Below are positions 1-26,866 of a DNA stretch of 53,037 nucleotides, piece after piece. How positions within the stretch are numbered: the first letter of the stretch is position 1; each line of letters starts with the position of its first letter. The translations under genes were made by a program, and so were the position numbers. The notes beneath the pieces were generated by a model that saw nothing but the letters and a program-made list of their open reading frames with translations, was not told where the DNA came from and made no database searches. The DNA is from Trichosphaerium sp. ATCC 40318 (Eukaryota; Protista; Tubulinea). The stretch is from the NCBI GenBank assembly GCA_038496445.1, contig JALMLS010000509.1, positions 1 to 53,037 on the forward strand, read 5' to 3'.

Positions 1-2181
1 GTCTTTTAACAAAACATCTAGGAATGTATGGATAACTGGCTAAACCAGATTGAAGCTACAGTAACTTTACAATGTCCTGCTGCTGTACAAACTGGATGCT
101 TTGTCCAGTAGAAGAAAGCCTGTACAAGTGTACCAAAACTGGTGAGACAACTAAAACTCTTTCCTTACAAAGTTGCTATTGACTTTATAAAAACAGGATT
201 AATTGTGAACCAAAACGATTTAGAGAGAGGATATCCAATAATTACAGATACTCGCATGAACTTATGGGGTTCTGTTTCTGGTCAGTCTTTTTACAACAAA
301 GGAGAATGGAACAAGAAAGGTTTATTGAAATTCACAACACTTTTGAACGATGAGACTATTCCTGTACGTTAAGAACCTCTATCAGAGCACGTGACATTTG
401 ATTTTTCTTACAAGCATTTTTTTAATCAATAGGAACGTCAAATAGAGTATATTAGAGCAAGAAATATGTTCTATAACTTTGTTGGCACAAACAAGAACTC
501 TTACTTTAATGTGTCTAAGATTGTATTTTTTGATAATCCGAAACTTGAAGGCAAATTCAAAGAGTCATACGATTCCTTTGTGGAAAAGACGATCAAAAGA
601 GATACTAAGGGAGACATAGAAAATGAAGGTATGTTTAGTATTGTTGTCAATTACTTACACTCTATGAAAGATATGACGCCACACAAACGGTGGTACGGTT
701 ATTAACAAATCATAAAAAACGCTGAAACGTGTCACCAAAGTGTTGTTCTTTTTGCGCCATGTTATTGTTGCTAATTATTTGAAGGGTAAAATCGCACCTT
801 AAGAATTATGTTATGCGTATATCCGGAAATGAAGGCATAAACCTCATAGCTGGTTTTCATGGAACATCTGAAGTACATTTTTATTAACCATTTTTGTTGC
901 TGCTAACTTGTATTTATCAAGGACGTGAGCTACGAGATTGCCACCCACAATTTTTTAGAGCCACATGAGCTCAAGCAACAAACTGATCCTGGTTATTTCG
1001 GTACTCATTGGTCACATGATTTGGAGTCCAACCGCTAACTTTTTACAAAAAGGCAAAGGCATTTATTTCACTCAGTACCCTTCTTATGGTATACCAGTTT
1101 ACGTGATTGATTGACGTCTTGCTAATCACGTGATTTTTTATAAAGGGTCCATATATGCTGAAATGGAAAAGTCACCAAAAGAGAAGTGTATGTTGATATC
1201 TTGGGTCATGATGGGAAAGCCTTATCCTGTCACTGAAGATCCAAATCCAGCAGATCCAAAAAGTCTTCTTGGTAAAGGATGCAAGGCATGTCAAACCTGT
1301 TCTAAAAATACATGTGATAACAGAATTGTTAGCCCGGGTATGATTCTCACTATGCTGTTGTGAAAAACAAAGCAAATGCTACAATATTCTTTCCTTGTCA
1401 GATGGACGAAAAACCAGATGCTGATGAGATTGTAGTATTCTCAAAGAACCAAGCATGTTCTTTTATTCAACTTTCTTTTTTGTTAGCCTAACTTGGTTTG
1501 ATCGTTTAGGTACTTCCTCGTTACCTTGTTTACTATACTCGCACCAGTAGCAATGCAGACATGTCATTTGATGTGAGTTGGCGTGAGGCAGCGTGTCTTA
1601 TTCTGTGGGTTGATGATAACATGTCAACAGAAAACCAGATACTGGCTGACAAAGTTGAAGAAAACGTCATTAAAACAAAGGTACTAGCACATAACTAAAT
1701 CCAATCTTCTTTCTCTCAGCGAATCATATTTGTAACCATTGCTTTCTGTAGGTCATTCAAATGACATCAACGAAGGAATTGATTGCTTGGTTAAACAAGT
1801 TTTCAGGTTTTTGCCCACCTAATAAGATACGTATTATCACAAATAGATATCGTAAAGATGACGGTGAAGATGAAGCTGCAGATATATTACTAAAATCATT
1901 AAGATCAAACGAAAAATGGGCGAACCTTTATACTTTTGTTTATTGTACTATCTTTTTATCCTTTTTTTTGGCTTTTGAGGTTGATTAACCGGTTTTAATT
2001 AGCTAGTACTATGGATGCCAGATACCTTGCGCGTAAATACAAAAGAACAACAGTGACGGATAAGGCTCAGGATATAGTTAATATACCCAATTTCGTTGAA
2101 CGCAAACAAAATTTGCACTGGGACCACTATCTCAGAACAGCGTTCCTTGTAGGAATCACATATATAGATTCTTTCAACTAA
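1..2181 (+). CDS. PARP-like (H-Y-E) ADP-ribosyltransferase with C-terminal receiver-like domain; multi-exon, 5' end outside window
   Basis: Spliced exons read GFHGTSE, TDPGYFGKGIYFTQYPSYG, CMLISWVMMGKPYPV, GYDSHY and DEIVVFSKNQVLPRYLVYY (PARP-fold motifs), then LILWVDDN...RIITNRYR. Stop TAA at 2179-2181. Confidence 0.75.
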
Positions 2182-2400
2182 CGAAACTTGAACATACAGA
2201 TGATAAAACTATGAAAAAGAAAGGGTGCAGACATGAAAAATGGCATTTTTAGGATAATTTGTCCAAAATAGTTTGTTGCTTGTTGGATTGATATTTGGTC
2301 GTGTATCGTAGTGGGAGAGGTTTTTTTTGTAATATTACTTTGTATGCCATGTATTTATTTAAATGAAAGGTTTATTTTTTTTATGTTGTATCACGTGTTC

Positions 2401-3888
2401 TTATTGTAGTGCAAACATACGAACAAGCAATAATTCTTTTGGAAAATCTGTTTGTAGCTTCTCTTTTACAAGCCTTAATCCAGCAGCCTCAAAAATTAGT
2501 TTTAAATGGCGATCGGAACGTGTTACAGAAGCATCTTGAGTATCAAGAATAAAATGGCTTCTATGGACGTTATCTTTGAGTATAATGATTCCTAGAAAAA
2601 AAATATAAACAAAAAGTTGTAAGAAAGCAGACTGTTTTTTCTTCGTACCAGTGTCAGAAAGAGCTGTTTTGCACATTTTTAAAAATGATATTAAATCTCT
2701 ATCTGTAAGGTATATAATAACCCATTGTATCCAAATAAGGTCGTAAGACTTTTCTTCTAATTTAGCTGTCTGGAGAAAAAAAAAAAGTAAGAAAGAAATA
2801 AGAAAAGTTGTGTAAAATCACAAAAAATGCCAACGTTCTCTATCAGTTGCATAGTAGTACTTCTACTTAGCAAGAACCCGAGTATATGCGCCGTGGTACT
2901 AACAAAGGATTCGAATTAAAAAAATTACCTGAAGAGGATCACAAATGAAGTTATCAATGCACTTAATTCCCTTTAAATGTGTGTTTTTAGCATAATCCAA
3001 GAACGTTTGGTTCTGTTCTAGTAGGTCCAGATGCTCAAATCCGAGTTTTGATAATACCAATTTTGCAACACGACCAATACCAGCACCACAATCTAGTAGA
3101 CAACCATTTTAATAAGCAACCAAAAAAAAAACCAAAAAACTTTGCTTCGCATGTTGTCTTACCAATTGTACGTCCTCTTTTAATCTTTGTGACTCCTTTA
3201 CCTTGTAAAAACAACCTAGCAAATGCAATAGATCCATTGGCATCCTATTTGCACTATCAGTGCATGTGTAAAATAGAGTTTTTGAACAGAAGAAAACGCA
3301 CAATTTCTGAAACGTTGTCATATCCTCCAAGCATACCATTGATGTCTGATGATTGATCCTTCATTTTGTTAGTATCCTACGCATGTGAATATGCGATAAC
3401 ATACCTCCCAGTGCTTTGTACTGAGTGAGTACCAATCTATGGCAGATGGTTGTTGAACTTCTTTAATTTCGCCTCCTTCGCCCTCTACGGTCGATTAAAA
3501 CGTATTCAGGAGCGTTTATACACGTTAAACACAGTTTTCAATCGTTTTCGGTTTTGTGAAAATACACTTGAGTAAAAGTATGCTAGTACCTGTTTCTTCA
3601 TCGTCTTCATGCCGTAGAACGCAATCTGCTGGGAAATTATCTGCCGGTAATGTTATACGAAGTGGATTCGTTTCATCGTCAACGCCTAGTAATTCACTGA
3701 GTATTTTAGTGCGTCTGTGGCGTAATGTAACCTTTCTCAGTTGTGTAGAATTTGGATAATTTCTGTTCGATTGTCAATTGGCGAGATGCGCTCCCCTTTG
3801 GGTTATTCCGCCCACCGCGGCCTTTTTTCTTGTTATTAGGTTTATTGCCTCCTCTCTTGTTTGGTTTCTTTCCACTCCTTCTAGACAT
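2401..3888 (-). CDS. NTMT1: Alpha-N-terminal protein methyltransferase (NTMT1/Tae1 family), multi-exon
   Basis: Motifs INGMLGGY, LDCGAGIGRV, YDLIWIQWVIIYLTD, LKDNV, DASVTRSD and FPKELLLVRMFAL. Basic N-terminal extension from ATG 3888. Confidence 0.9.
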
Positions 3889-4009
3889 GTCGTAGCGAGT
3901 ATAATTATACAGAAAAAACCCTCACAACAAGAATTTGGGCCAAACAGTGAAAACGTTTGAATAAACAAAAGTCTGCTACAGCGAAAAAAATCAGGTGTCA
4001 ATAGCGATA

Positions 4010-7000
4010 ATGAGTGAGCCGGTCAAGAACGCAGAGTAATTATGCTTTTAACGCTCGTTTATCTAATAAGCATAATAGACCGACAAATGAGCCAGTAGAA
4101 GCGGTTACTAATGAGGATAAACCAAAGGATACCAGTACAACAGTAGAGAAGAAACAGAAAGAAAAAAGGCCAGATCCAATATGGAGTGATGTAAAAAGCT
4201 TATTATGGGATGTAGCGGATGGTACGATAGAGTGTTAACTGTTTCTTAAACCAACAAGATAATTAGAAATGAAACCTGCACAAATGGTGTATGGTGATAG
4301 ATTTACGCTTGTAGAAGCTATGGGCGCTATAGAGGTATGAAACGCGAAGAAATTACCACCATTTCGTTGTGAAGGCGTTGTTTCTTATTCCAGAGTAGCT
4401 CATGGATAAAATGGATCCGTGCGTTGGTGCAGGAGAAGTAAAAACGCTGTACGAGCACATGCTAGATGGTACCCTCACAAAGCCTTGCGATCTCACTTAT
4501 AGCGAAACAATGGGCGTCATTGATCACTTGCTTACTCTGGAGGCACAAAAAATGAGACTACAAGCCATAATATACTCACTCTTTCCTAGCTCATGTGGTA
4601 CAGCGGTGCTCAGTTGATACAGACTCTATTTTCGTGCTATTACATGTTCGATCATAAAGTCATCAAGGATAACCCTATTCTCGAGGTTGTTATAAAATTC
4701 TACCTCGCAAGGTGTAAGACTATACGTGGTATGGCTAAAAACACAGATAACTATGAGGTAACAAAAGATATTAGCTAATTTTTAAACGGCAAAACTATAT
4801 TTTATTTTTTTCGAAGTTTCTTTCGGGTTTTTTTCCAATTGGTGAGGTTGACAAGAAATGTAGGTAGATGATTTTTCTGCTGTTATATCTGGTATTGCTA
4901 TTCCTGATATAGACATGAACGAAACGTTCGAGAAATGCGATGATTTGCTCACAAAGCTAAAAAATAAAGGTTTTCTAATTTTTTCATTGTTAATGCTTAT
5001 ATTTAATAGAAATGAAGCTGAAATGTGAAACAAACGAAGAGGAAAAAATCAGACAAGCACTGATAACGCGATTAATGTTTCACAAGGTGAGATTTTATTC
5101 AGTGAAGATTGACACATCCTTGAATAGCAACTGTCACATTTGATTTTCTTTTTGAGTTATGGTTTTTTTACACGTGTTTCTGTTATGCTTAATTTATTGA
5201 TAGTCTTACCAAAAAGCTTGGGTTCAACTAGAAGCTCGTGAATTCACTACAGCAAAAAGAACATTTTTGGGTTGTGTTGTTCAAATTAACAAGTTGAAAC
5301 AATCTCAAGAACTGCTAAAGGTACGTCTGCCCTACTCTAAAAATTGGTGTCAATACATTTAACACATATGTTTGGTAATGTGTTTACTTTGTGGACACAC
5401 AACGGACACAACATAGTAACAAGCTATTAATTGTGCTTGTAATATCACGTGTTATTAACAATTCTATGTTAGGTTCCAGATGTCTTTAGGAGTGATATGG
5501 GTAAACGCTATGCAAATTCTCCATTGAAGCCAATTACACCGTGGACATTTTTAGAAGCAGTGCCACACCTTACAAATGTTCTCCGTAATTTTATGAAGCT
5601 TTGTGATATAACAGCATATAACAATCTATTCACTTTACGATTTTTCATCTGGGAGCTTATGGATAATGCTTCTAGCGCTATTATTCGTATCACACTTGTG
5701 GTGCGTAGCAATAGTTACGCTAACAACAAAGAAAGAAAGAAAGACATGTTTAGCTTGCCACAAAGAACTTTTTCTTGCGCGGTGAAATTTCTTGACTTTT
5801 TTTTTTTTGATTTTGTCATGATAGTCTATCGCAATGTTTTATGCGTTTCTTACACTATTGTAGCACAGTATCTTTAAGAGAGTACCTGATAAAGAAGATT
5901 TATTGATATTTGGAAAAGAGTCACCAATGGAGCTTACAAGGGACATGGCTACTAAATTCTTTGCTGTACCAAGCCGTACATTTGGTCAAAAGAAAGATAT
6001 TGATACTAACTTATCAATTGAGACTGCTGGAAGGGTTCGTATTCAATTTTTTGCGACTATCTAAACTACATAAAAGGCTGACTTTTTTCTTTTTCAAAGG
6101 TTGTTCTTCGCCAGTATCAAGTATTTTCATTGAACAAAGCCCAACAAAGGCGTCGCTTAAGTAAGGAATTTGACTACTGGATGCACTGGATAACAGAGGT
6201 ACAAAAAAACCCAACAATCCAGAAAAGACACCAAATGCATACCCCTTTTTTTCTTGACATCATAAAACCCTGCGATGTATTGCCTCTCTGATTGTACGCG
6301 TCAGATTTTTATTTACTTTTTATTAGAGTGATCAAGTTGATACAGCACTATGTGGTCTTTCTAGCGCAGATTCGGTACAATATTTAAAAACATGGTTGTA
6401 ATCAAATAACTCATTTCGAAATCTTTTAGTTCCCTTATGATTACCCACGATACTTTCTTTCTCTTTACATGGATCTATTATACGTATCAATGATTCGTTA
6501 CCTTCAATTGGGATTTGAGTTACAACTCTACAGACCAGATGAATACTTTATGATCTACTGGTATGACTCTCTTTTAAGCGAGAAGAAAAACCTCAAACTT
6601 ATCAAAAATTAGGTACATGGATACTTTATATTTGAGAAGGTCAAACAGTTTTGAACATGTATTGAGGCATAACCTTTTGCGTACGTATTTGTGCTTTCGG
6701 AGAATGTTTTAGAAATTAAAACTGACTTTTGTAGGCAACACAAACGGTTGGGTGAAGCCACCAATGGGTGGTAAACAACCACCAAAAAGTCAACCTCAAA
6801 AAGGAAGAAAAAATCAAAAAGGAAAAAAAGGCAACAAAGGTACGTTGTCCGTCCATGACCTCCCTCTATCGGTCACCAGTAATTACACATATAATAAAAG
6901 CCTATTTTCGTGTTGACTCTATCAATAGGCAAGCGCAAGAAGACACTTACCATAAGACAAAAGGAACGCATTGTCAAGCAACCACTTCCTTTCAATTACC

Positions 7001-7773
7001 TTCATAAGTATATCCTCGCATACCAAAACCTCTGTAGAGGTGTACTAAGAGTAAGTTAACATATATTTCTTATTCTTTACCTTCTAAGCTTTCTTTTAAA
7101 GCATATTGCAGTACTCATGATGAACGATAAGATTTTCATTCCAGAGGTAACATCATTTTGAACCAAAAACTCAAGACTCACTTAGCTCCTTTAGTTTAAG
7201 TTTGGTTCTCCTCAAATGAATTTTTATCATCGCTTCTCAGCATTCTATACGCTTCCTCATCCTCCTTCTGAGGCTTGGCATAAGTTCAAGCAACAAGGGA
7301 CCAATTTTAAGTCATTTAAGGTAACTTTTTAAAACATTGCCCTAATCACTTTTTCTAACTTCTGCTTCAGCTTCAAGACGTCTTCAGAGGTTCATTGGAT
7401 TCTTACAAACTCGCTTTAGAGGGATTCAACGAGTTGAATTCGCATGCTGATACACCAGACGCACTCAAGAACACCATCAAGCGTGTCAAGTTGGTATGTG
7501 TTTAAGAGTGTTAAAGCGCCTTAAACTCTTTTTCTTTTAAGTTTCTGTCATTGTTCAACAGCTTACTGGTTATTTTAGGTCGCTCACACGAACTACACCG
7601 GATTGTCTAAGCTTCCACATAACAAGCAACTGAAGGATGATACATTGACTGCAAAATTTTCATTCGATGGTCACCCTCATTGGCCTGTAATTACACTTGT
7701 TAAAAAACAAGCCAAGCAACCAGTGTACGAGAAATTACGTGGTGAACCAACTGCTGAAGAAAAAAAAAAGTAA
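4010..7773 (+). CDS. NAA35: NatC N-acetyltransferase auxiliary subunit (NAA35/MAK10), multi-exon
   Basis: FTLVEAMGAIE..MDKMD, DHLLTLELMWYSGAQLIQTLFSCYY, LGFELQLYRPDEYFMIYWY and HRFSAFYTLPHPP are typical of Mak10/NAA35. Stop at 7771-7773. Confidence 0.85.
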
Positions 7774-20183: not shown

Positions 20184-20369
20184 GCGTCATTGTACAAGCA
20201 CCACATCCAATAAACCAAATCTACTCTATAAACACATTGAAGCCTTTCCAAGGCATCAAACCCCTTTCGCAGAACACGTGCGCGTGTGTTGCGATTAGTT
20301 TACGCACACAGAAAGACCAGTGGAAGCAATAACGGTCAACTGTTTTCACGAAGTTTTTTTTTGTTCATC

Positions 20370-20801
20370 ATGCTTGCTCGCATCTCAGTACGCTCAAAAG
20401 CGCTAAATACACGCGCTGTTCGCCCAAATATTGCTCAAAAGAGCTACTGCAACGAGGTGAAGAGACATGTGAGTACTGTAAAGCTACTTTCCACGATTGA
20501 AGCCCCACCTGGCTATAAAGTTGTAAAGACGCATGGTATTGTCACTGGAGCCGTTGTATGCACGCGACATGTTGGCCACGACATTTTTAACATGCTCAAA
20601 ACCCTGATTGGCGGAGAGCTGCATAGTTACACTACACTTCTTGCTGAAGCGCGAGAAACAGCAATGACACGCTTGGAGGAAAATGCTGAATCAAAAGGCG
20701 CCAATGCAGTCATTGGCATGCGTTTTCAGACGAACAACATTGCGCAAACAGCAGCAGAGGTCATGACATACGGAACTGCCGCTACAATAGAAGAAATCTA
20801 A
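20370..20801 (+). CDS. YbjQ/UPF0145-family protein with putative mitochondrial presequence, intronless
   Basis: HGIVTG, LKTLIGGELHSYTTLLAEARETAMTRL, GANAVIGMRF and EVMTYGTA. Arg-rich, acid-free N-terminus MLARISVRSKALNTRAVRP. Confidence 0.9.
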   Translation: MLARISVRSKALNTRAVRPNIAQKSYCNEVKRHVSTVKLLSTIEAPPGYKVVKTHGIVTGAVVCTRHVGHDIFNMLKTLIGGELHSYTTLLAEARETAMTRLEENAESKGANAVIGMRFQTNNIAQTAAEVMTYGTAATIEEI

Positions 20802-21142
20802 CCAAACAGCTTGTACGCCACCACACAAAGCGAAATACGCAAAAAAGGCTCTTTAAAATAAAATTAATACCGGCGCATTACATTCCCCTTAGACAAGCTT
20901 CTTTACACTTGGTTCGAGTCAGAAACGACAATATAGCACCTGACACGTCGAATGCCACTTTAGCTTGCTCCGTTAACAGTAATTTCCAAAAACTGAACTC
21001 ACGTTCAGTATTTATTGAGAGCGCAGCTGAAGGCTACTGACGCTTATGATGAAGCAAATTCATCCACAAAAAATTGTTGTACTAGCACAAACATTTGACA
21101 TGTGTGAAGGGCATAGTTAAAAGTTGTGTTCTTTATCAGTTA

Positions 21143-23646
21143 TCAGCTCTTAGTAGCACTAAATTCTATCAAGTATTTGATCTGTACTTGATTCGCATCA
21201 TAGACAACGTATTCCTTGTTACTAAAATCTTTGCCAACATCTCCAATAACACTATCATTTGAACCAGGTGGCCTAAAGAAAAAACTGATGAGCAAAAAAG
21301 TGCCCAAAACAAAAACAATCATGGCAATGTAATACCTTTGCAAGTCTTTCTTGATTTGTTTAGTTGTATATGATCTTCCCAAGGCAACATCAGCAAGTAG
21401 TACAAAAGATGAAAGACGCCTTGGTCGCTGTTGTTTCTTCTTACCTCTGTTTCGTTCTAAAAATGGAAAAAATTAGTATCTTGATATTCGTTTTAATCTT
21501 ATCACGTGCTTTGAGAGGAATTATTGCTATTTGATGCACTTTCAAGTCCAGTGTATTTTATACTAGCGTATATATTATCTGAAAAGTATATACCAGCACC
21601 TAAAAACCCGAAATCCGTTCGCTTTGCTATTCCTCGTGAAACAACGATTTTTGGCAAGAAAATACCTCTTGACAACAACCTAAATTCATTAGAACAATCT
21701 CGTCTTACCTTGAACTAGAAGTACTATGACTTAACATACCCAACGTAATTGGATGTTTTAGAGCCATGAACAAGACATTGTACATTACCCAAGTCCTTAA
21801 TGTAGGATTCTTGACGAGAAACAGAAAATATGTTTGTAATCTAAAAAGGTATTTTAGGAACTTTTTGCGAGTTATCTTCTTCAATGTACCTGTAGTCTAT
21901 ATGTGTTATCTTTGCTATCTTGTGCCTTGGAATTCTCCCATTTTGTTTTTATATCCTTATACCTTTGAGAATCTTTAGGGATGGCAGTGATGTCACAATT
22001 AAGAGACTCATAATCACGTTGCTCTTTTGTTTTGTTTGTATCCAATTCTTGACCTCTATTCTGTTGTACTGTTATTATATCCTTCATCAGTTGAAGTAAT
22101 GTTTGTTTATCTTCAAGTGCTTTTAAATTATCAATAACATTCTTCGCTACTTGCTCCTTGTTCTTCCCAAGGCGATGAGGAATCAAAGAGTAAAAAACAG
22201 AACTAAAAAACATTTGGGTTAGCTCACAAACCTTAAAACCAATACTAATTTACCTCAATTGCAGCGCTTTACGCTCGTTGTCACCACCTCCTTTAAACAA
22301 ACTACGGCTGCATTACTACTTTTAAATGGTTTGTTGTGGTGATACCTAAATAGAGCACCAAGAGCTTTCTCTCCAGCTTCAATTTGTTCCATTGAAAGAA
22401 TACCCAATGGAGTTTCTAACCCATCTTGAGTTACCTTGGCAAGTAATACTTTTTTAATCTCTTCACTAGCACTTGAAAACAGTGTCCTAGAGAATATATT
22501 AAAACAACGAAAATCCAAAAACAAAGCAAAACATGGCGGTGCGTCAACCACAACGAAGAACAACACGTGAACAAACAAAACCAAAATTGTTAAAGATTAC
22601 ATCTAATCCAACACGTACCTCATCAATCGTGTCACTTTTTCATCAATGGCTTTCTGTGATTTCGTTCGGCCACTTTCAACATTTTTTGTTTCCTTTCTGA
22701 CGTGTCCTAATTATAGATAGGTTAGTAACAATAGAATACACCACAGGAACAAGTTATTACCTGAGCCAAGCTTATTTGATACAGATAATAGTGATACTCT
22801 ATGATACCCTTTCTCTGATGATATTTTTTCACGGATGATATGATAATAAAGAATGGTAGCTTCTTCTAAACTCTTTAGATATCGACATTGTTTTTGTCCT
22901 ATTTTTTTCTTGGTGGACTCCAAAGCATCTGTACGTCCATGATGCGTGAATAGCCTAGAAATGAGATTATTAACATGAATATAAACATCATTAAGGGTGG
23001 ATATATTACCTGTAAGGATAGGTAGAAGCGTTTGCATTCGAAGATTTATGCATCTCAAGAACATAGAATTTGTTATTGTTTTGAACAAAGTCCATGGCAT
23101 GAAGCACAATATTCTTCTCTATTGTAAAATCTGTGCCAAATTCCGGTTCGTTTTTAGCACCATGAGTATATACTATAACATTAGGAATCTTTGTTGAATC
23201 AACATCTATCTTTGTCGCCTCGTCAAAAGACATAAAAGAACTTGCTGATTTCCCTGAACTACTTTCTTTTTTTGGAGCTGTTTTCGAGTTTGTATCGACT
23301 TCTCTACCTTCTTTGATGCTCATAGATATAAAATCAGGTGTAACGACACGTGGCCTATCATTTTCGGACCATGAGGCAACACGACGAAGCTTTGACGATG
23401 AGTTCAAGCTAATTTCTTGTTCAGTTGCCACAAGGAAAGATACGCGGTTATTAAGCATATAAGATACTGTCCCTCCTAATCATGATTATATGTTAATTTT
23501 TGTTTACAAAGTAATCTCATAATCACTGCTCAACGTACCATTCGCTTTTACTTGTTTGCTTAAAGCTGATTTTTCAGAAAATGAGATTTTATCAGAAAAG
23601 CAAAAGGATTTATCTTTAAACACTTTTTCGACTCCACCAGTTTTAA
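21143..23646 (-). CDS. PARP4/vault-PARP-like module: BRCT, WGR-like, regulatory and catalytic domains (probably the C-terminal part of an RNA ligase-PARP fusion)
   Basis: BRCT: VFKDKSFCF..VKANGGTVSYMLNNRVSFLV..VVTPDFI. WGR-like: NNNKFYVLE..FTHHGR. Regulatory: TPLGILSMEQIEAG, FYSLIPH. Catalytic: LVHGS, GLLSRGIFLPKIVVSRG..RTDFGFLGAGIYFSD, DVALG, KEYVVYD. Confidence 0.9.
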
Positions 23647-23772
23647 CTTGAATGAACATTAGAATGTAATAAAAACAGTAGCACGGATAAGATATAACAA
23701 TACATTTATTGACACTAGTGCAACAAAGAGGACAATTTTTAACACTTTTTTTTCATGTAAAGACACACGTGC

Positions 23773-25150
23773 CTTCTAATGTTAGCCAACGTGCTGCTTC
23801 TTTTCGAATTATTACCTAGAAACACAAATGTAAGTTATCGAATAAATAAGAATGTATTGCGTTAATATAATACAACGTACTTCTATTTCCGACCAAGACA
23901 ATTTGCTCGCTTGTAATTCTTGCTTACTTTCTTTTTTAATGTCATCAACAATCCATTGAACAAATATACTTTCACTACTCTTCTTCACATCACCTTCACA
24001 CGTTTCTGACAACCCTTGTCTATAGCAAAATATATGTTAGCATCACTTTAAAGCTAGTTCAAGCTGCAGCGTACGCAAGTCTGGGTTTTGTGAGAAACAT
24101 ATCGACGAACATTTGAGGACTCGTGGGTGTAACTATGCCAAGGGATGATGTCGATCCAGTTACTTTAGTATTTACCATCTGATGACTTTCTCCTTTTGTC
24201 TTGAATGACAGCGCCTCAAACACTTCTTCATCTACCATTTTGTCCTGTTCTAGACTTACAGGAAACCATACAAGACCCTTTATGAGAAGAATATTAAAAA
24301 TCACATGCATGCTCAAAAGAGCCTTACTTCACCATTTCCTTTCACGCCAAATTTATCGCGAACAAAAGGGTCTTCTCTATCAATCTCAGCGACAATAGTC
24401 TCCATAACCTTGCTCTGTCTTTCTAGTTGATTCTTGTCATTAAAGTTAATCCTCAAGGTTGTGTAGCTATCAAACTTGAAGTGCTTGAACCTAATCAAAA
24501 AAACAATTTAGAAAGTTTTTAAGTATTGTTTGGTTGTGGATTACCATGGCATCACATGAAGTTCTTTAGGTTTTGATGACGATACCATGACACTCATTAT
24601 CTTATCTGGATCAGACACTATGTTTTTGCCAAGTTTAATAGCGAAGACAACAAGGATTTTGTCTTTTAGGTCAGCTAGTGCTACATGTTTTTGTACTCCT
24701 GGACCACACCATTCACCAAAGATTGTCACCATTTCTTCTGTAGAGTTTGAGGAACCTTGAATGGTATTTTAATAACAAGATTACGCAACAAGGAGTACCA
24801 AAAAGGCTACGCAAGCCAGTTTCAAGCGATATGAAGTAAGATTTATTAGTCTTTCCCCAATTCGAAAAGCCAAACCCGGTTCCTTGTCCTTTACCTCCGA
24901 GCAATGCTTTACGACTCTGGTACCGTATTTGGCCATTTTTTAACGATACACCGACGTTAGCGCCATGAAGCTTTATTTTCGCCTTGTATAGTATATTACC
25001 ATCACCTATTTGATCATACGGATACTCTAATGGTTCTAGTGCAAATTTTCAGCAAAAACACTACAATAGACGTTACTCACTCGGTGCTTGTTCTAGCGCT
25101 CTACATACATTTGCTAGTTTTGTAATGGAAGGCCACAAAGAGTGTTTCAT
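23773..25150 (-). CDS. T4 Rnl2-family ATP-dependent RNA ligase (probably the N-terminal part of the fusion with the PARP module), multi-exon
   Basis: Motif I KLHGAN, Ia QSR, III IFGEWCGPGVQK, IIIa VFAI, IV GEGLVW, V FKTK, and C-domain FLTKPRL / DDIKKE. Confidence 0.85.
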
Positions 25151-25594
25151 GGCTGTGGTGACTTTGATACTATAAATAAAAAATAAATGAGTTTTACGAC
25201 TTTTGTATTTGAGAATTTTTTGCGAAATATTGAACACGTGTAGCAATAATTTTGTGGAGGAGACACGTAACAAACACAATTGTCTAGCAAGATGAGTTTC
25301 CCATTGGCAAAACGTACTCTCTCTACTGGTAAACTCGTTTGTTCAAAGTCTTTAGGTCATACATATGAAACATTTTGACATTCACAAATGTCAGAGATTT
25401 GTACGGTACAGTCTACATACAAACGCTCCCAGTACCATAAATGACTTGAATTGCAAATATATAGTGTATGTATGTGCCACAAGTGTTCTCTAGCAGCTCA
25501 GTGGCTGATACTATCAATTTCATTGAATGTAACTACCACACTCGTGAGTCATCAATTATACGATTATAGCCACCCACAGTACAGTAAGGGGTTC

Positions 25595-26866
25595 ATGAAA
25601 GTTGTAGTTAGAACCGCTAAGGGCAATACATCAGTTGTTAATCTAAATGGAGCATTACAACCTACTTTGGCGTTATCTGGTATAAGGGCATTGCCTACAG
25701 AACTTATTAAGTATATTGCTTCTGAATATCTTGAATTTCCTTCTATATGCATGTTGGGAGGTACCAATAAGCGCATTCGCTCTGCAACGGATATTCCCGC
25801 CCTGTGGGCTAAAGGATTCAGTCAAAAAGAGCTAGAGCGGATAAAAGCTGGCAAGACTACAGTACGTTGTAGCGCAATTCTATTCAAGGTTCTTAACCAC
25901 CATAGGCACCGCCAAACCAGTCTTTACGATTTATCTACTGTTACAGACGCAACTGCCGTTTAAAATGCTTAACGGTGCTAAATAGATGCTACACGTTCAT
26001 GCACAAGCGAAATTGGGCACCCCCAGCACAATGTACGTTGTTCTAGCGTCTTTTTTCTGATAAGTTGTTTTGCAGTACAATCTATTGAGGCACTAGAAGC
26101 CCGATTAGATAAAAGATTACCCGAGGAATACAGGAGTTTACTAATGGTTCGTATCGCAAATTGTAAGTTTAGTAATTTAAGAAAGAATAACGATGGTCAT
26201 TGTACAACGCGACATCAAAAAAGTTCTACGTGGTCATCAAGGAATAGATCTAACGGTAAGATGACGAAAAGGACAAGAATAGCACTTGACCTTATTAGTA
26301 TACAAAAAAAACTTGTGACGCTAATGTACATTTTATGCTGTAGTATTAATCATTTACGCTAGGAAACTTGTTTTTGTTGGGAATTGGTGAAGTATCATCT
26401 AATGTACTAAACAAAAACGATGCTAGTACGCTTGAAAAAATAGTAATAGCGTATACTAAAGGATCTAAAGGTACGCGTAGTCATAAAATAAGTAGAAGCG
26501 GAATTAGAAATTGGCCTAAAAATATTAGCAACCCGACAAAATACAAAAACTTTTAAAAGTGTCATAATTATTGGTTATATTACTTTCAGTGTACTTTTAA
26601 CTTCCTTTTGAAAACTGTCTTTTTTGGACGTCGCGTTTAGCGTTGTTTGTTGTTTCTCCGGCCATTTGGGTTTTTTTGATTTTTTTTTTTTTGCAATGGT
26701 TTTTATTTTGTTCCGAAACGTCAAAGTATCTAGTTAGTTTACTTATTACTGCGTAGAGTGGTGTTTAGAAGTTAAAACAGGGAGAATATTTATTAGAGAT
26801 GGTATTTATGATGAGTTTAAAATTTATGATAATACATTCCATCTACTTCTATCTATGACTTCTTAA
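25595..26866 (+). CDS. F-box + SMI1/KNR4 (SUKH)-like protein, multi-exon
   Basis: F-box-like ALPTELIKYIASEYL..LGGTNKRIR..LW. SMI1/KNR4-like IEALEARLDKRLPEEYRSLL. Last exon WCLEVKTGRIF..NTFHLLL. Internal exon structure is uncertain. Confidence 0.55.

Follow-up and report, generated by a model that had tools for sequence, protein, structure and literature searches.

A predicted Rnl2-type RNA ligase that can be spliced in frame to a PARP4-like module in the amoeba Trichosphaerium

A nucleic-acid ligase is paired with an NAD+-using enzyme of the ADP-ribosyltransferase fold in tRNA splicing (Trl1 ligase and Tpt1), and with a break-sensing PARP in DNA nick repair (PARP1-XRCC1-DNA ligase III). These systems are functional analogies to the gene described here: their partners are separate proteins from other families, whereas in Trichosphaerium both predicted activities can share one chain. 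For the ligase half, the closest described proteins are phage T4 Rnl2 (PDB 2HVQ, 1S68) and its phage and bacterial relatives, which are ~350 aa long and have motifs I (KxHGxN), III, IIIa, IV and V and a helical C-terminal part in common with it. Unlike T4 Rnl2, the Trichosphaerium gene is nuclear, has six introns in the ligase part and continues optionally into a PARP. For the PARP half, the closest counterpart is human PARP4, whose N-terminal 575 aa consist of BRCT, WGR, helical (HD) and catalytic (ART) domains (PMC10450202). The domain order predicted for the Trichosphaerium protein agrees with this, with weak matches for BRCT and WGR; the protein has the H-Y-E triad and the PARP4-type catalytic motifs LPKxVVxRGxxRTDxGxLGxGIYFSD and EYVVYxxNQVxxKYxIxFS, but its gene ends at 21143 without VIT, vWA or MVP-interacting domains, it carries an Rnl2 ligase at the N-terminus, and its HD exon sequence is nearer to PARP1 than to PARP4. 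Amoebozoan clade-5 PARPs (Dictyostelium Q54HY5 and Q55GU8, and an expanded set in Acanthamoeba) carry lineage-specific appended domains (PMC2964712, PMC4245714); like the Trichosphaerium PARP half, in which BRCT is weakly predicted, they are PARP4-like, with BRCT and without VIT or vWA, but what has been reported as appended are 14-3-3, ubiquitin-related and actin-related domains, with no RNA ligase among them. Fungal clade-1E PARPs have the architecture BRCT-WGR-PRD-PARP (PMC2964712), the same four-domain order as predicted for Trichosphaerium; they differ in having no ligase, and the Trichosphaerium catalytic exons match PARP4 rather than PARP1/2. No description of an Rnl2-PARP architecture was found in the literature searched, in keeping with the original prediction, whose author knew of none; database checks for other fusions were limited.

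The window, that is, the whole stretch of DNA analysed, comprises 53,037 nt of Trichosphaerium sp. ATCC 40318 (contig JALMLS010000509.1), and RNA evidence was taken from RNA-derived contigs of the public runs X1, X2 and X3. The ligase-PARP gene lies on the minus strand (25150-21143) and has 18 coding exons with a predicted product of 981 aa and ~112 kDa; an Rnl2-type RNA ligase makes up aa 1-355, and the rest is a PARP half with a BRCT-like domain, a WGR-like domain, a helical regulatory domain and a catalytic domain with the H-Y-E triad. Twelve of its 17 coding introns are present at their predicted places in the RNA contigs. Four others (23538-23476, 23009-22955, 22760-22707 and 22618-22487) lack RNA evidence among the contigs shown and are based on canonical GT-AG sites, the reading frame and homology to paralogues. 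The supported introns include one of GC-AG type (21509-21457, 53 nt): a gcacgt donor had been thought necessary at 21509, and the donor there reads GCACGTG, with the joint 21456/21510 (ends CT..GC) present in both X1 and X2. Upstream of the coding region, an X3 contig carries 216 loose letters behind 25169, the first 30 of which equal plus-strand 25318-25347. This stretch is the 3′ end of a non-coding 5′UTR exon on the minus strand (25347-25318), which runs on upstream for at least another ~216 nt and is separated from the first coding exon by a 148-nt 5′UTR intron (25317-25170, GTACGT..AG). The leader sequence contains an in-frame stop ahead of the ATG. At the distal end, the stop codon of the fusion reading frame (21145-21143) is followed by a 3′UTR (21142-20999) with AATAAA at 21016-21011; record 1 of the X1 contigs continues 101 nt past 21100 and covers this region, ending near 20999.

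The ligase module is formed by coding exons 1-7 (25150-23773, minus strand; exons 25150-25081, 25035-24799, 24755-24545, 24490-24328, 24277-24075, 24019-23881 and 23815-23773), and all six of its introns are found in RNA contigs. As originally proposed, it bears the full set of Rnl2 motifs: KLHGAN (aa 45-50), QSR (63-65), FGEWCGPGVQK (115-125), VFAI (139-142), GEGLV (226-230) and FKTKG (252-256), followed by the C-terminal helical part. The lysine of motif I (KxHGxN) is present, as are motifs III, IIIa, IV and V. In a column-by-column comparison with 11 family members (alignment A1), KLHGAN, FGEWCG, VFAI, GEGLV and FKTKG all find their counterparts, and the profile of this family, including the ligase exons, matches T4 Rnl2 (2HVQ) over residues 3-301 with an E-value of 4e-17. 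Single exons scored below the PF09414 cut-off of 27 bits (20 and 12.7 bits), exons 2 and 3 matching weakly, and a PDB search with exon 2 alone gave nothing significant; the spliced model scored 172 bits against PF09414-bearing proteins. The Rnl2-specific C-terminal domain PF18043 was not detected in exons 5 and 6; the profile alignment to 2HVQ does extend into the C-domain, to residue 301 of 335. Stand-alone RNA_ligase proteins of 320-340 aa can be aligned over their whole length with aa 1/29-352, and they end only a few residues from the fusion point. Identity to stand-alone relatives is 27-43%, and the nearest database relatives are located on a phage-like and a jumbo-phage-like contig. The Trichosphaerium genome also has a paralogue of the ligase half alone, at C31:128861-129767. 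Together, the motifs and profile matches support the classification of this half as an Rnl2-type RNA ligase.

The PARP half begins with a BRCT-like domain (23646-23250, approximately aa 356-440), encoded by exon 8 (23646-23539) and the start of exon 9, and continues with a WGR-like domain (23140-22761, approximately aa 505-611; ..FYVLEMH..YRLFTHHGRTD..), encoded by the end of exon 9 and by exon 10 (22954-22761). The original prediction of BRCT and WGR domains agrees with the order of the published PARP4 N-terminus (PMC10450202), but the matches, on exon pieces, are weak for BRCT and weak to moderate for WGR (E 0.11 for exon 8 against PF00533, E 0.06 for the WGR-like piece against PF05406). Atlas feature matches of exon 9 were to fungal BRCT+WGR clusters and were likewise weak (score 0.86), a PDB search with the same exon returned nothing significant, and the WGR-like region aligns with paralogues on contigs C138 and C17. 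The helical regulatory domain (HD/PRD; 22706-21890) spans exons 11-14 (22706-22619, 22486-22346, 22301-22254 and 22202-21890), and introns 12 and 13 are present in spliced form in RNA contigs. Its exon 14 reaches 27.2 bits with PF02877 (cut-off 26.8), and the HD exon matches PARP1 catalytic fragments in the PDB (E 4e-5). The catalytic domain (21840-21143) is encoded by exons 15-18 (21840-21740, 21679-21510, 21456-21336 and 21272-21143), and the four introns of this stretch (21889-21841, 21739-21680, 21509-21457 and 21335-21273) are all seen in RNA (X1, X2). The H-Y-E triad consists of His in LVHGS (aa 831-835), Tyr in GIYFSD (871-876) and Glu in KEYVVYD (958-964). Among solved structures, exon 16 matches only PARP4 chains at E ≤ 0.01 (human PARP4, E 9e-10), and exon 18 matches human PARP4 at E 2e-4 versus 0.03 for PARP2. 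The best matches of these two exons thus point to a clade-5, PARP4-like catalytic domain, in agreement with the first reading of the sequence. The basic insert KRNRGKKKQQRPRR at aa 899-912 looks like a nuclear localisation signal.

The two halves meet at an alternatively processed GC-AG intron of 126 nt (23772-23647, minus strand, phase 1), with the donor G/GCACGTG and an acceptor ending in ttctaatgttcattcaag. Its removal joins ..RWLTLE to VKTGGVEKVF in frame, with the predicted junction peptide ..RWLTLEVKTGGVEK... An RNA test across this junction had been proposed together with the intron itself, and the splice is present in RNA: ahead of 23773, an X1 contig has a loose end of 15 letters that is the exact reverse complement of 23646-23632, the start of the predicted next exon. 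The joined 23773/23646 sequence is absent from the 70-Mb genome DNA. Support for the fused junction comes from one contig of one run (X1), with 15 nt on the far side, and none of the RNA contigs shown links the ligase part to exon 9. Retention of the intron instead leads to ..LTLEGTCVFT and the predicted stop (TGA, 23755-23753), giving a 361-aa ligase-only product. Between 23812 and 23690 an X3 contig is unspliced and reads through the GC donor, yet it is spliced at each of the seven other introns within its span. It ends after the in-frame stop, 15 nt past an AATAAA (23710-23705), which marks a probable intronic poly(A) signal and short-mRNA end at about 23690 (the contig holds no poly(A) tail); the distal 3′ end has a similar geometry. 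Because the X1 contig is spliced at 23772-23647 and the X3 contig reads through to the intronic end, this is one gene with two outputs: the ligase alone or, via splicing, the ligase-PARP fusion. The caveat of the original prediction that alternative isoforms might exist has therefore been borne out, with a ligase-only mRNA that ends inside the intron and the fusion as one of at least two outputs. In X1 and X2, contigs of the PARP half and of the ligase half have similar depths, and contigs give no isoform ratios.

A further Rnl2 gene is found in the same genome on contig C284, 88 nt upstream of a zinc-finger PARP1-like gene. As judged by tblastn and a reading of the locus, this pair is not a second copy of the fusion: its ligase belongs to a different Rnl2 subfamily, the PARP gene is of the zinc-finger PARP1-like type, and an in-frame stop lies between the two, with no convincing linking in-frame intron at the locus. 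The nearest relatives of the C284 ligase are canonical Rnl2 proteins of ~336 aa with about 30% identity, which gave no cross-species test of the pair. With some 8 Rnl2-type loci, some 25 PARP loci and some 20,000 genes assumed, a rough estimate gives 0.01 expected Rnl2/PARP adjacencies, compared with 2 seen. With this second pair in the same genome, a chance juxtaposition of Rnl2 and PARP is unlikely.

Taken together, we favour the reading (probability about 0.6) that one nuclear gene of an intron-rich amoeba gives both a ligase-only protein and a 981-aa fusion in which break sensing, ADP-ribosylation and sealing would be coupled. The catalytic motifs are intact in both halves. Retention of the intron, with an RNA end inside it, would yield the 361-aa stand-alone Rnl2-type ligase, and its splicing would let the ligase run in frame into the PARP4-like module as a bifunctional protein. 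In the fusion, a break in structured RNA or in an RNA:DNA hybrid may be bound on its 5′-phosphate side by the WGR/BRCT part, and binding may free the NAD+ site from the block imposed by the helical domain, as happens in PARP1-3. ADP-ribose would then be added by the catalytic domain to the protein itself, with the Ser/Lys/Glu-rich linker (aa ~440-480) as the probable site, or to a target or nucleic-acid end close by, and the Rnl2 module, adenylylated on Lys45, would seal the 3′-OH/5′-P nick. Sealing would be linked to ADP-ribose signalling or not, depending on whether the intron is spliced or the RNA is polyadenylated within it. Such a protein could combine the sensing of RNA breaks with ADP-ribosylation and ligation, or act in anti-ribotoxin defence. 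Two points count against the favoured reading: Rnl2 requires 3′-OH/5′-P ends and no end-healing enzyme is linked to the ligase-PARP gene, and we know of no proven activation of PARP4 by nucleic acids. A further proposal, tentative and rather doubtful, is that the fused isoform by itself suffices for repair and signalling at RNA nicks: a 5′-phosphorylated RNA break would trigger the PARP4-type WGR/HD switch, ADP-ribose would be placed on the break site or on the enzyme as the attached Rnl2 seals the nick, and regulated intronic polyadenylation would toggle between the plain and the signalling ligase.

PARP4 is, to our knowledge, the least understood PARP of the break-sensor type, with WGR and helical domains that were recognised only in 2023 and no known ligand. 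The fusion of a PARP of this type to an enzyme specific for 3′-OH/5′-P RNA nicks offers a testable guess at what such PARPs sense, and would be a eukaryotic case of RNA sealing physically coupled to ADP-ribosylation. Through competition between a GC-AG intron and an internal poly(A) site, one gene would provide a single- or a dual-function enzyme. If the tentative proposal on nick repair and signalling is true, the C284 pair would suggest a wider, undescribed partnership of Rnl2 ligases and break-sensing PARPs in amoebae, and would give a clue to the nucleic-acid ligand of vault-type PARPs, which has long been unknown.

The same RNA contigs can be read differently, as reflecting two separate functional proteins: a ligase from the short mRNA and a PARP4-like enzyme that starts at the ATG within the intron (23659-23657, a possible PARP-only start predicted from sequence and in frame, as first noted), from its own transcript or by reinitiation, with the fusion mRNA as a minor read-through by-product of a very compact genome. 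The in-frame position of this ATG, the X3 contig that ends 15 nt past AATAAA, and the C284 tandem, which is apparently unfused with 88 nt from the Rnl2 stop to the PARP1-like ATG, are consistent with this view. However, X1 assembled the spliced and not the unspliced form at the donor, at a depth of 6.8 that resembles the rest of the gene, the splice preserves the reading frame, and the gap between stop and ATG leaves only 94 nt for a terminator and a promoter; we regard two separate proteins as unlikely, if worth serious consideration. Less probable still is a genuine fusion that acts on DNA, its BRCT/WGR part sensing DNA nicks and its ligase sealing those with a ribonucleotide-ended 3′-OH side, such as those that follow ribonucleotide incorporation or RNA-primed repair. 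The ribonucleotide requirement of T4 Rnl2 is confined to the 3′-OH side of a nick, the BRCT-WGR-HD-ART modules of PARP1-3 are responsive to DNA breaks, and the possible nuclear localisation signal would fit such a role, but the catalytic domain resembles that of a mainly cytoplasmic vault PARP and not those of PARP1-3. Finally, an assembly artefact or chance match in the public X1 contig, suggested by a single contig with 15 letters past the junction, is very improbable, since these letters begin exactly at the predicted donor, are the exact first bases after the predicted acceptor and unique in the window (expected number of matches 0.01 when one mismatch is allowed), and lie on the same contig as the neighbouring confirmed splice 23812/23878.

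We also looked for ligase-PARP architectures elsewhere. A library search with ligase exon 2, a short query of 78 aa with low sensitivity, gave 21 matches, none of them a PARP fusion: the long ones were spurious Gly-rich or Ig-repeat proteins, and the others were stand-alone ligases of 320-550 aa. A metagenome scan using the ART exon was blank, and no PARP was found near the Balamuthia tRNA_bind-Rnl2 gene or near the relatives on one phage-like, one jumbo-phage-like and one bacterial contig.

The VIT and vWA domains of PARP4 had been described as missing from the gene, and the stop codon is indeed followed directly by the RNA-covered 3′UTR. The genome contains 36 VIT matches, none at the ligase-PARP locus or at the two PARP4-like paralogues examined, on C138 and C17, which argues against a canonical vault PARP at these loci; on contigs with both PARP and VIT matches, the two are tens of kb apart. 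The major vault protein, for which a check of the genome had been suggested, is encoded at several loci, and two TROVE-domain loci are present as well.

The gene lies on the minus strand of an AT-rich window (G+C ~36%) of eukaryotic character, in which introns are short (43–148 nt), with GTAAGT or GTACGT donors and, as read from the sequence, CTAAY branch sites near the AG. Its model comprises 18 coding exons, which run from the ATG at 25150 to the stop codon at 21145-21143 and give a CDS of 2,946 nt and a protein of 981 aa. This ATG is the first in-frame one downstream of a stop in the spliced leader, and RNA contigs place a 148-nt intron (25317-25170) in the 5′UTR. The leader carries a short upstream ORF, MFHMYDLKTLNKRVYQ. 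The 5′UTR exon, at least 216 nt long in a contig of public run X3, would span 25318-25533 if contiguous, and thus overlap the start of an opposite-strand ORF of 170 aa (25451-25963, plus strand).

Parts of the window are present in three (X1, X2, and X3) of the five public runs listed, and the contigs from these runs are spliced and therefore RNA-derived. Of the 17 coding introns, 12 are spliced in these contigs at exactly the modelled sites; four internal introns have no RNA support in the contigs shown. The original prediction held that a 126-nt intron (23772-23647) joins an Rnl2-type ligase to a PARP half, and one X1 contig bears this out with a 15-nt overhang; in the model this is a GC-AG intron between exons 1–7 (ligase) and exons 8–18 (PARP). 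This contig covers 23773-23812, is spliced over 23816-23880, and has 15 extra letters preceding 23773, CTCCACCAGTTTTAA. Reverse-complemented, these equal 23646-23632, where the predicted next exon begins. The 15-mer occurs once in the window (0.01 expected), and the 70-Mb genome assembly does not contain a 30-mer spanning the join, so the join was made in RNA and not copied from a processed gene.

In X3, a 1,384-nt contig lacks the seven other introns that fall within its span, but reads through the donor of the fusion intron, continues past the TGA at 23755-23753, and ends at 23690, 15 nt after an AATAAA (23710-23705). The distal end of the gene has a like geometry, a contig there ending near 20999, downstream of an AATAAA (21016-21011). 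Taken together, the spliced X1 junction, the unspliced X3 contig, and the matching geometry of the distal end read as a locus that yields two mRNAs, a short ligase-only form and a long fused form, as the alternative isoforms considered in the original prediction would require. The short form is probably made by polyadenylation inside the fusion intron. The contigs give the path assembled at the donor (spliced in X1, unspliced in X3) and not an isoform ratio; the spliced path in X1 is similar in depth to the remainder of the gene, and contigs of the PARP and ligase halves have similar depths in X1 and X2.

Both GC-AG introns of the gene open with GCACGTG, and one of the two is directly confirmed by RNA: the intron at 21509-21457, whose gcacgt donor had been predicted to be needed, is spliced in X1 and X2 contigs (joint ends CT..GC on the plus strand). 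The fusion intron therefore belongs to an ordinary, working intron class of this organism. Across the window, CACGTG, the palindrome within both of these donors, has 47 sites against 8.6 expected, a 5.5-fold excess; the sites include 21503-21508, 23766-23771, 22564-22569, 23347-23352, and 25235-25240.

The ligase half matches PF09414 weakly when single exons are searched (E 8e-4 and 0.14), and exon 2 retrieves stand-alone RNA_ligase proteins of 320–430 aa. In the spliced model, aa 29-352 align end to end with residues 23-331 of a 338-aa stand-alone protein (172 bits). The full Rnl2 motif set originally proposed is present in our family alignment, where the exon pieces carry KLHGAN, QSR, FGEWCGPGVQK, VFAI, DPFV..FGVKGNGEGLVW, and FKTKGESH, followed by the C-terminal pattern F..W...DIKKES..EL..S.L.W..........RW. 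The alignment profile matches T4 Rnl2 (2HVQ, residues 3-301) at E 4e-17 and the Naegleria ligase at only E 0.05. Stand-alone relatives terminate a few residues past the position of the exon 7 end, and the fusion point therefore follows a complete ligase. One phage-like and one jumbo-phage-like contig carry the nearest relatives. Two relatives, P0007 (Pfam tRNA_bind and RNA_ligase) and the 550-aa KAL6051413.1 of Balamuthia mandrillaris (by its NCBI name alone), have an N-terminal tRNA-binding domain, which hints that the subfamily may act on tRNA in some lineages. In the genome itself, a paralogue from this Rnl2 subfamily encodes the ligase alone (C31:128861-129767, minus strand; ..NDIKKEGKDELEASNLTWG..RKWFLKK..stop). 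Nothing like the PARP half follows it over ~6 kb of downstream sequence, and it is a useful unfused comparator. At least five more PF09414 loci are present in the genome (C21:449129, C132:26544, C30:276961, C4:199534, and C55:222615).

The PARP half was predicted to be PARP4-like, and among solved structures human PARP4 is the sole match of exon 16 (E 9e-10) and the best match of exon 18 (2e-4; PARP2 0.03, PARP1 0.15). Of the proposed BRCT, WGR, regulatory, and catalytic domains, the catalytic one has an intact H-Y-E triad (LVHGS, GIYFSD, KEYVVYD), and exon 14, in the regulatory part, reaches the PF02877 cut-off and also matches PARP1 catalytic fragments. BRCT on exon 8 (E 0.11) and WGR on exon 9 (E 0.06) are weak matches that stand in the expected order; as no more than a lead, exon 9 also resembles BRCT+WGR clusters in its language-model features (score 0.86). 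The same order, BRCT-WGR-HD-ART with divergent WGR and helical regulatory (HD) domains, forms residues 1-575 of human PARP4 (Suskiewicz et al, PMC10450202). The protein ends directly after the catalytic (ART) domain and, as anticipated, lacks VIT and vWA, like Dictyostelium clade-5B proteins (PMC2964712). A strongly basic insert in a catalytic-domain loop, KRNRGKKKQQRPRR (aa 899-912; 21456-21415 and 21513-21510, the coding sequence spanning the GC-AG intron at 21509-21457), may direct the protein to the nucleus or touch nucleic acid.

The genome contains at least 29 PARP-domain matches. Two paralogues with WGR-HD-ART, on C138 and C17, lack the basic insert, any ligase similarity in the 7–8 kb upstream of the match, and any VIT match at their loci. 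The suggested search for vault components found several major vault protein loci and two TROVE loci, so vaults are probably present in this organism.

A second Rnl2-PARP pair lies on the plus strand of contig C284 (~2090-7283 of locus L019, C284:15500-24500), identified by domain matches and sequence reading. Its Rnl2 gene is canonical (PF18043 1.3e-7; PF09414 3e-5 in the last exon) and stops at a TGA (L019:3356-3358), 88 nt before the ATG (L019:3446) of a PARP1-like gene with zf-PARP, BRCT, WGR, PARP_reg, and ART domains (zinc-finger-like N-terminus MSKPKLKVEYAKSNRSK, canonical WGR motif, PARP_reg E 7e-31). Both halves belong to different subfamilies from those of the fusion gene, neither being close to its counterpart, and no convincing in-frame intron linking the two C284 genes was found. 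This viable tandem, unfused arrangement keeps alive the alternative that ligase and PARP act as two separate proteins. By our rough estimate (~8 Rnl2-type and ~25 PARP loci from the searches, ~20,000 genes assumed), chance alone would give ~0.01 such adjacencies, whereas the genome has two, which supports a functional or regulatory link between Rnl2 and PARP.

The fused form appears, provisionally, to be a new combination of known domain kinds. Full-text literature searches that paired RNA ligases, Rnl2 included, with PARPs, WGR or BRCT domains, vaults, or amoebae returned no description of an Rnl2 or RNA ligase fused to a PARP, and two family-wide PARP surveys do not contain one (PMC2964712, PMC4245714), in keeping with the original prediction; the novelty is judged from this literature. 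In Amoebozoa, clade-5 PARPs are expanded and carry varied appended domains, RNA ligase not among them (PMC4245714).

The locus has two intact catalytic motif sets, two RNA forms, and the domain order described here. By family resemblance, Lys45 would be adenylylated with ATP and the ligase would seal 3′-OH/5′-P nicks in duplex RNA, like T4 Rnl2. Binding of a 5′-phosphorylated break by the WGR domain may lift HD autoinhibition, as in PARP1-3, and the ART domain may then modify the Ser/Lys/Glu-rich BRCT-WGR linker or some target. The lesion common to both modules would be a ligatable nick, and this shared target most economically explains their presence on one chain; candidate substrates are RNA, hybrid, or ribonucleotide-ended DNA. 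Beyond the 3′ end of the gene, a convergent ORF (20286-20801, plus strand) looks YbjQ/UPF0145-like by eye.
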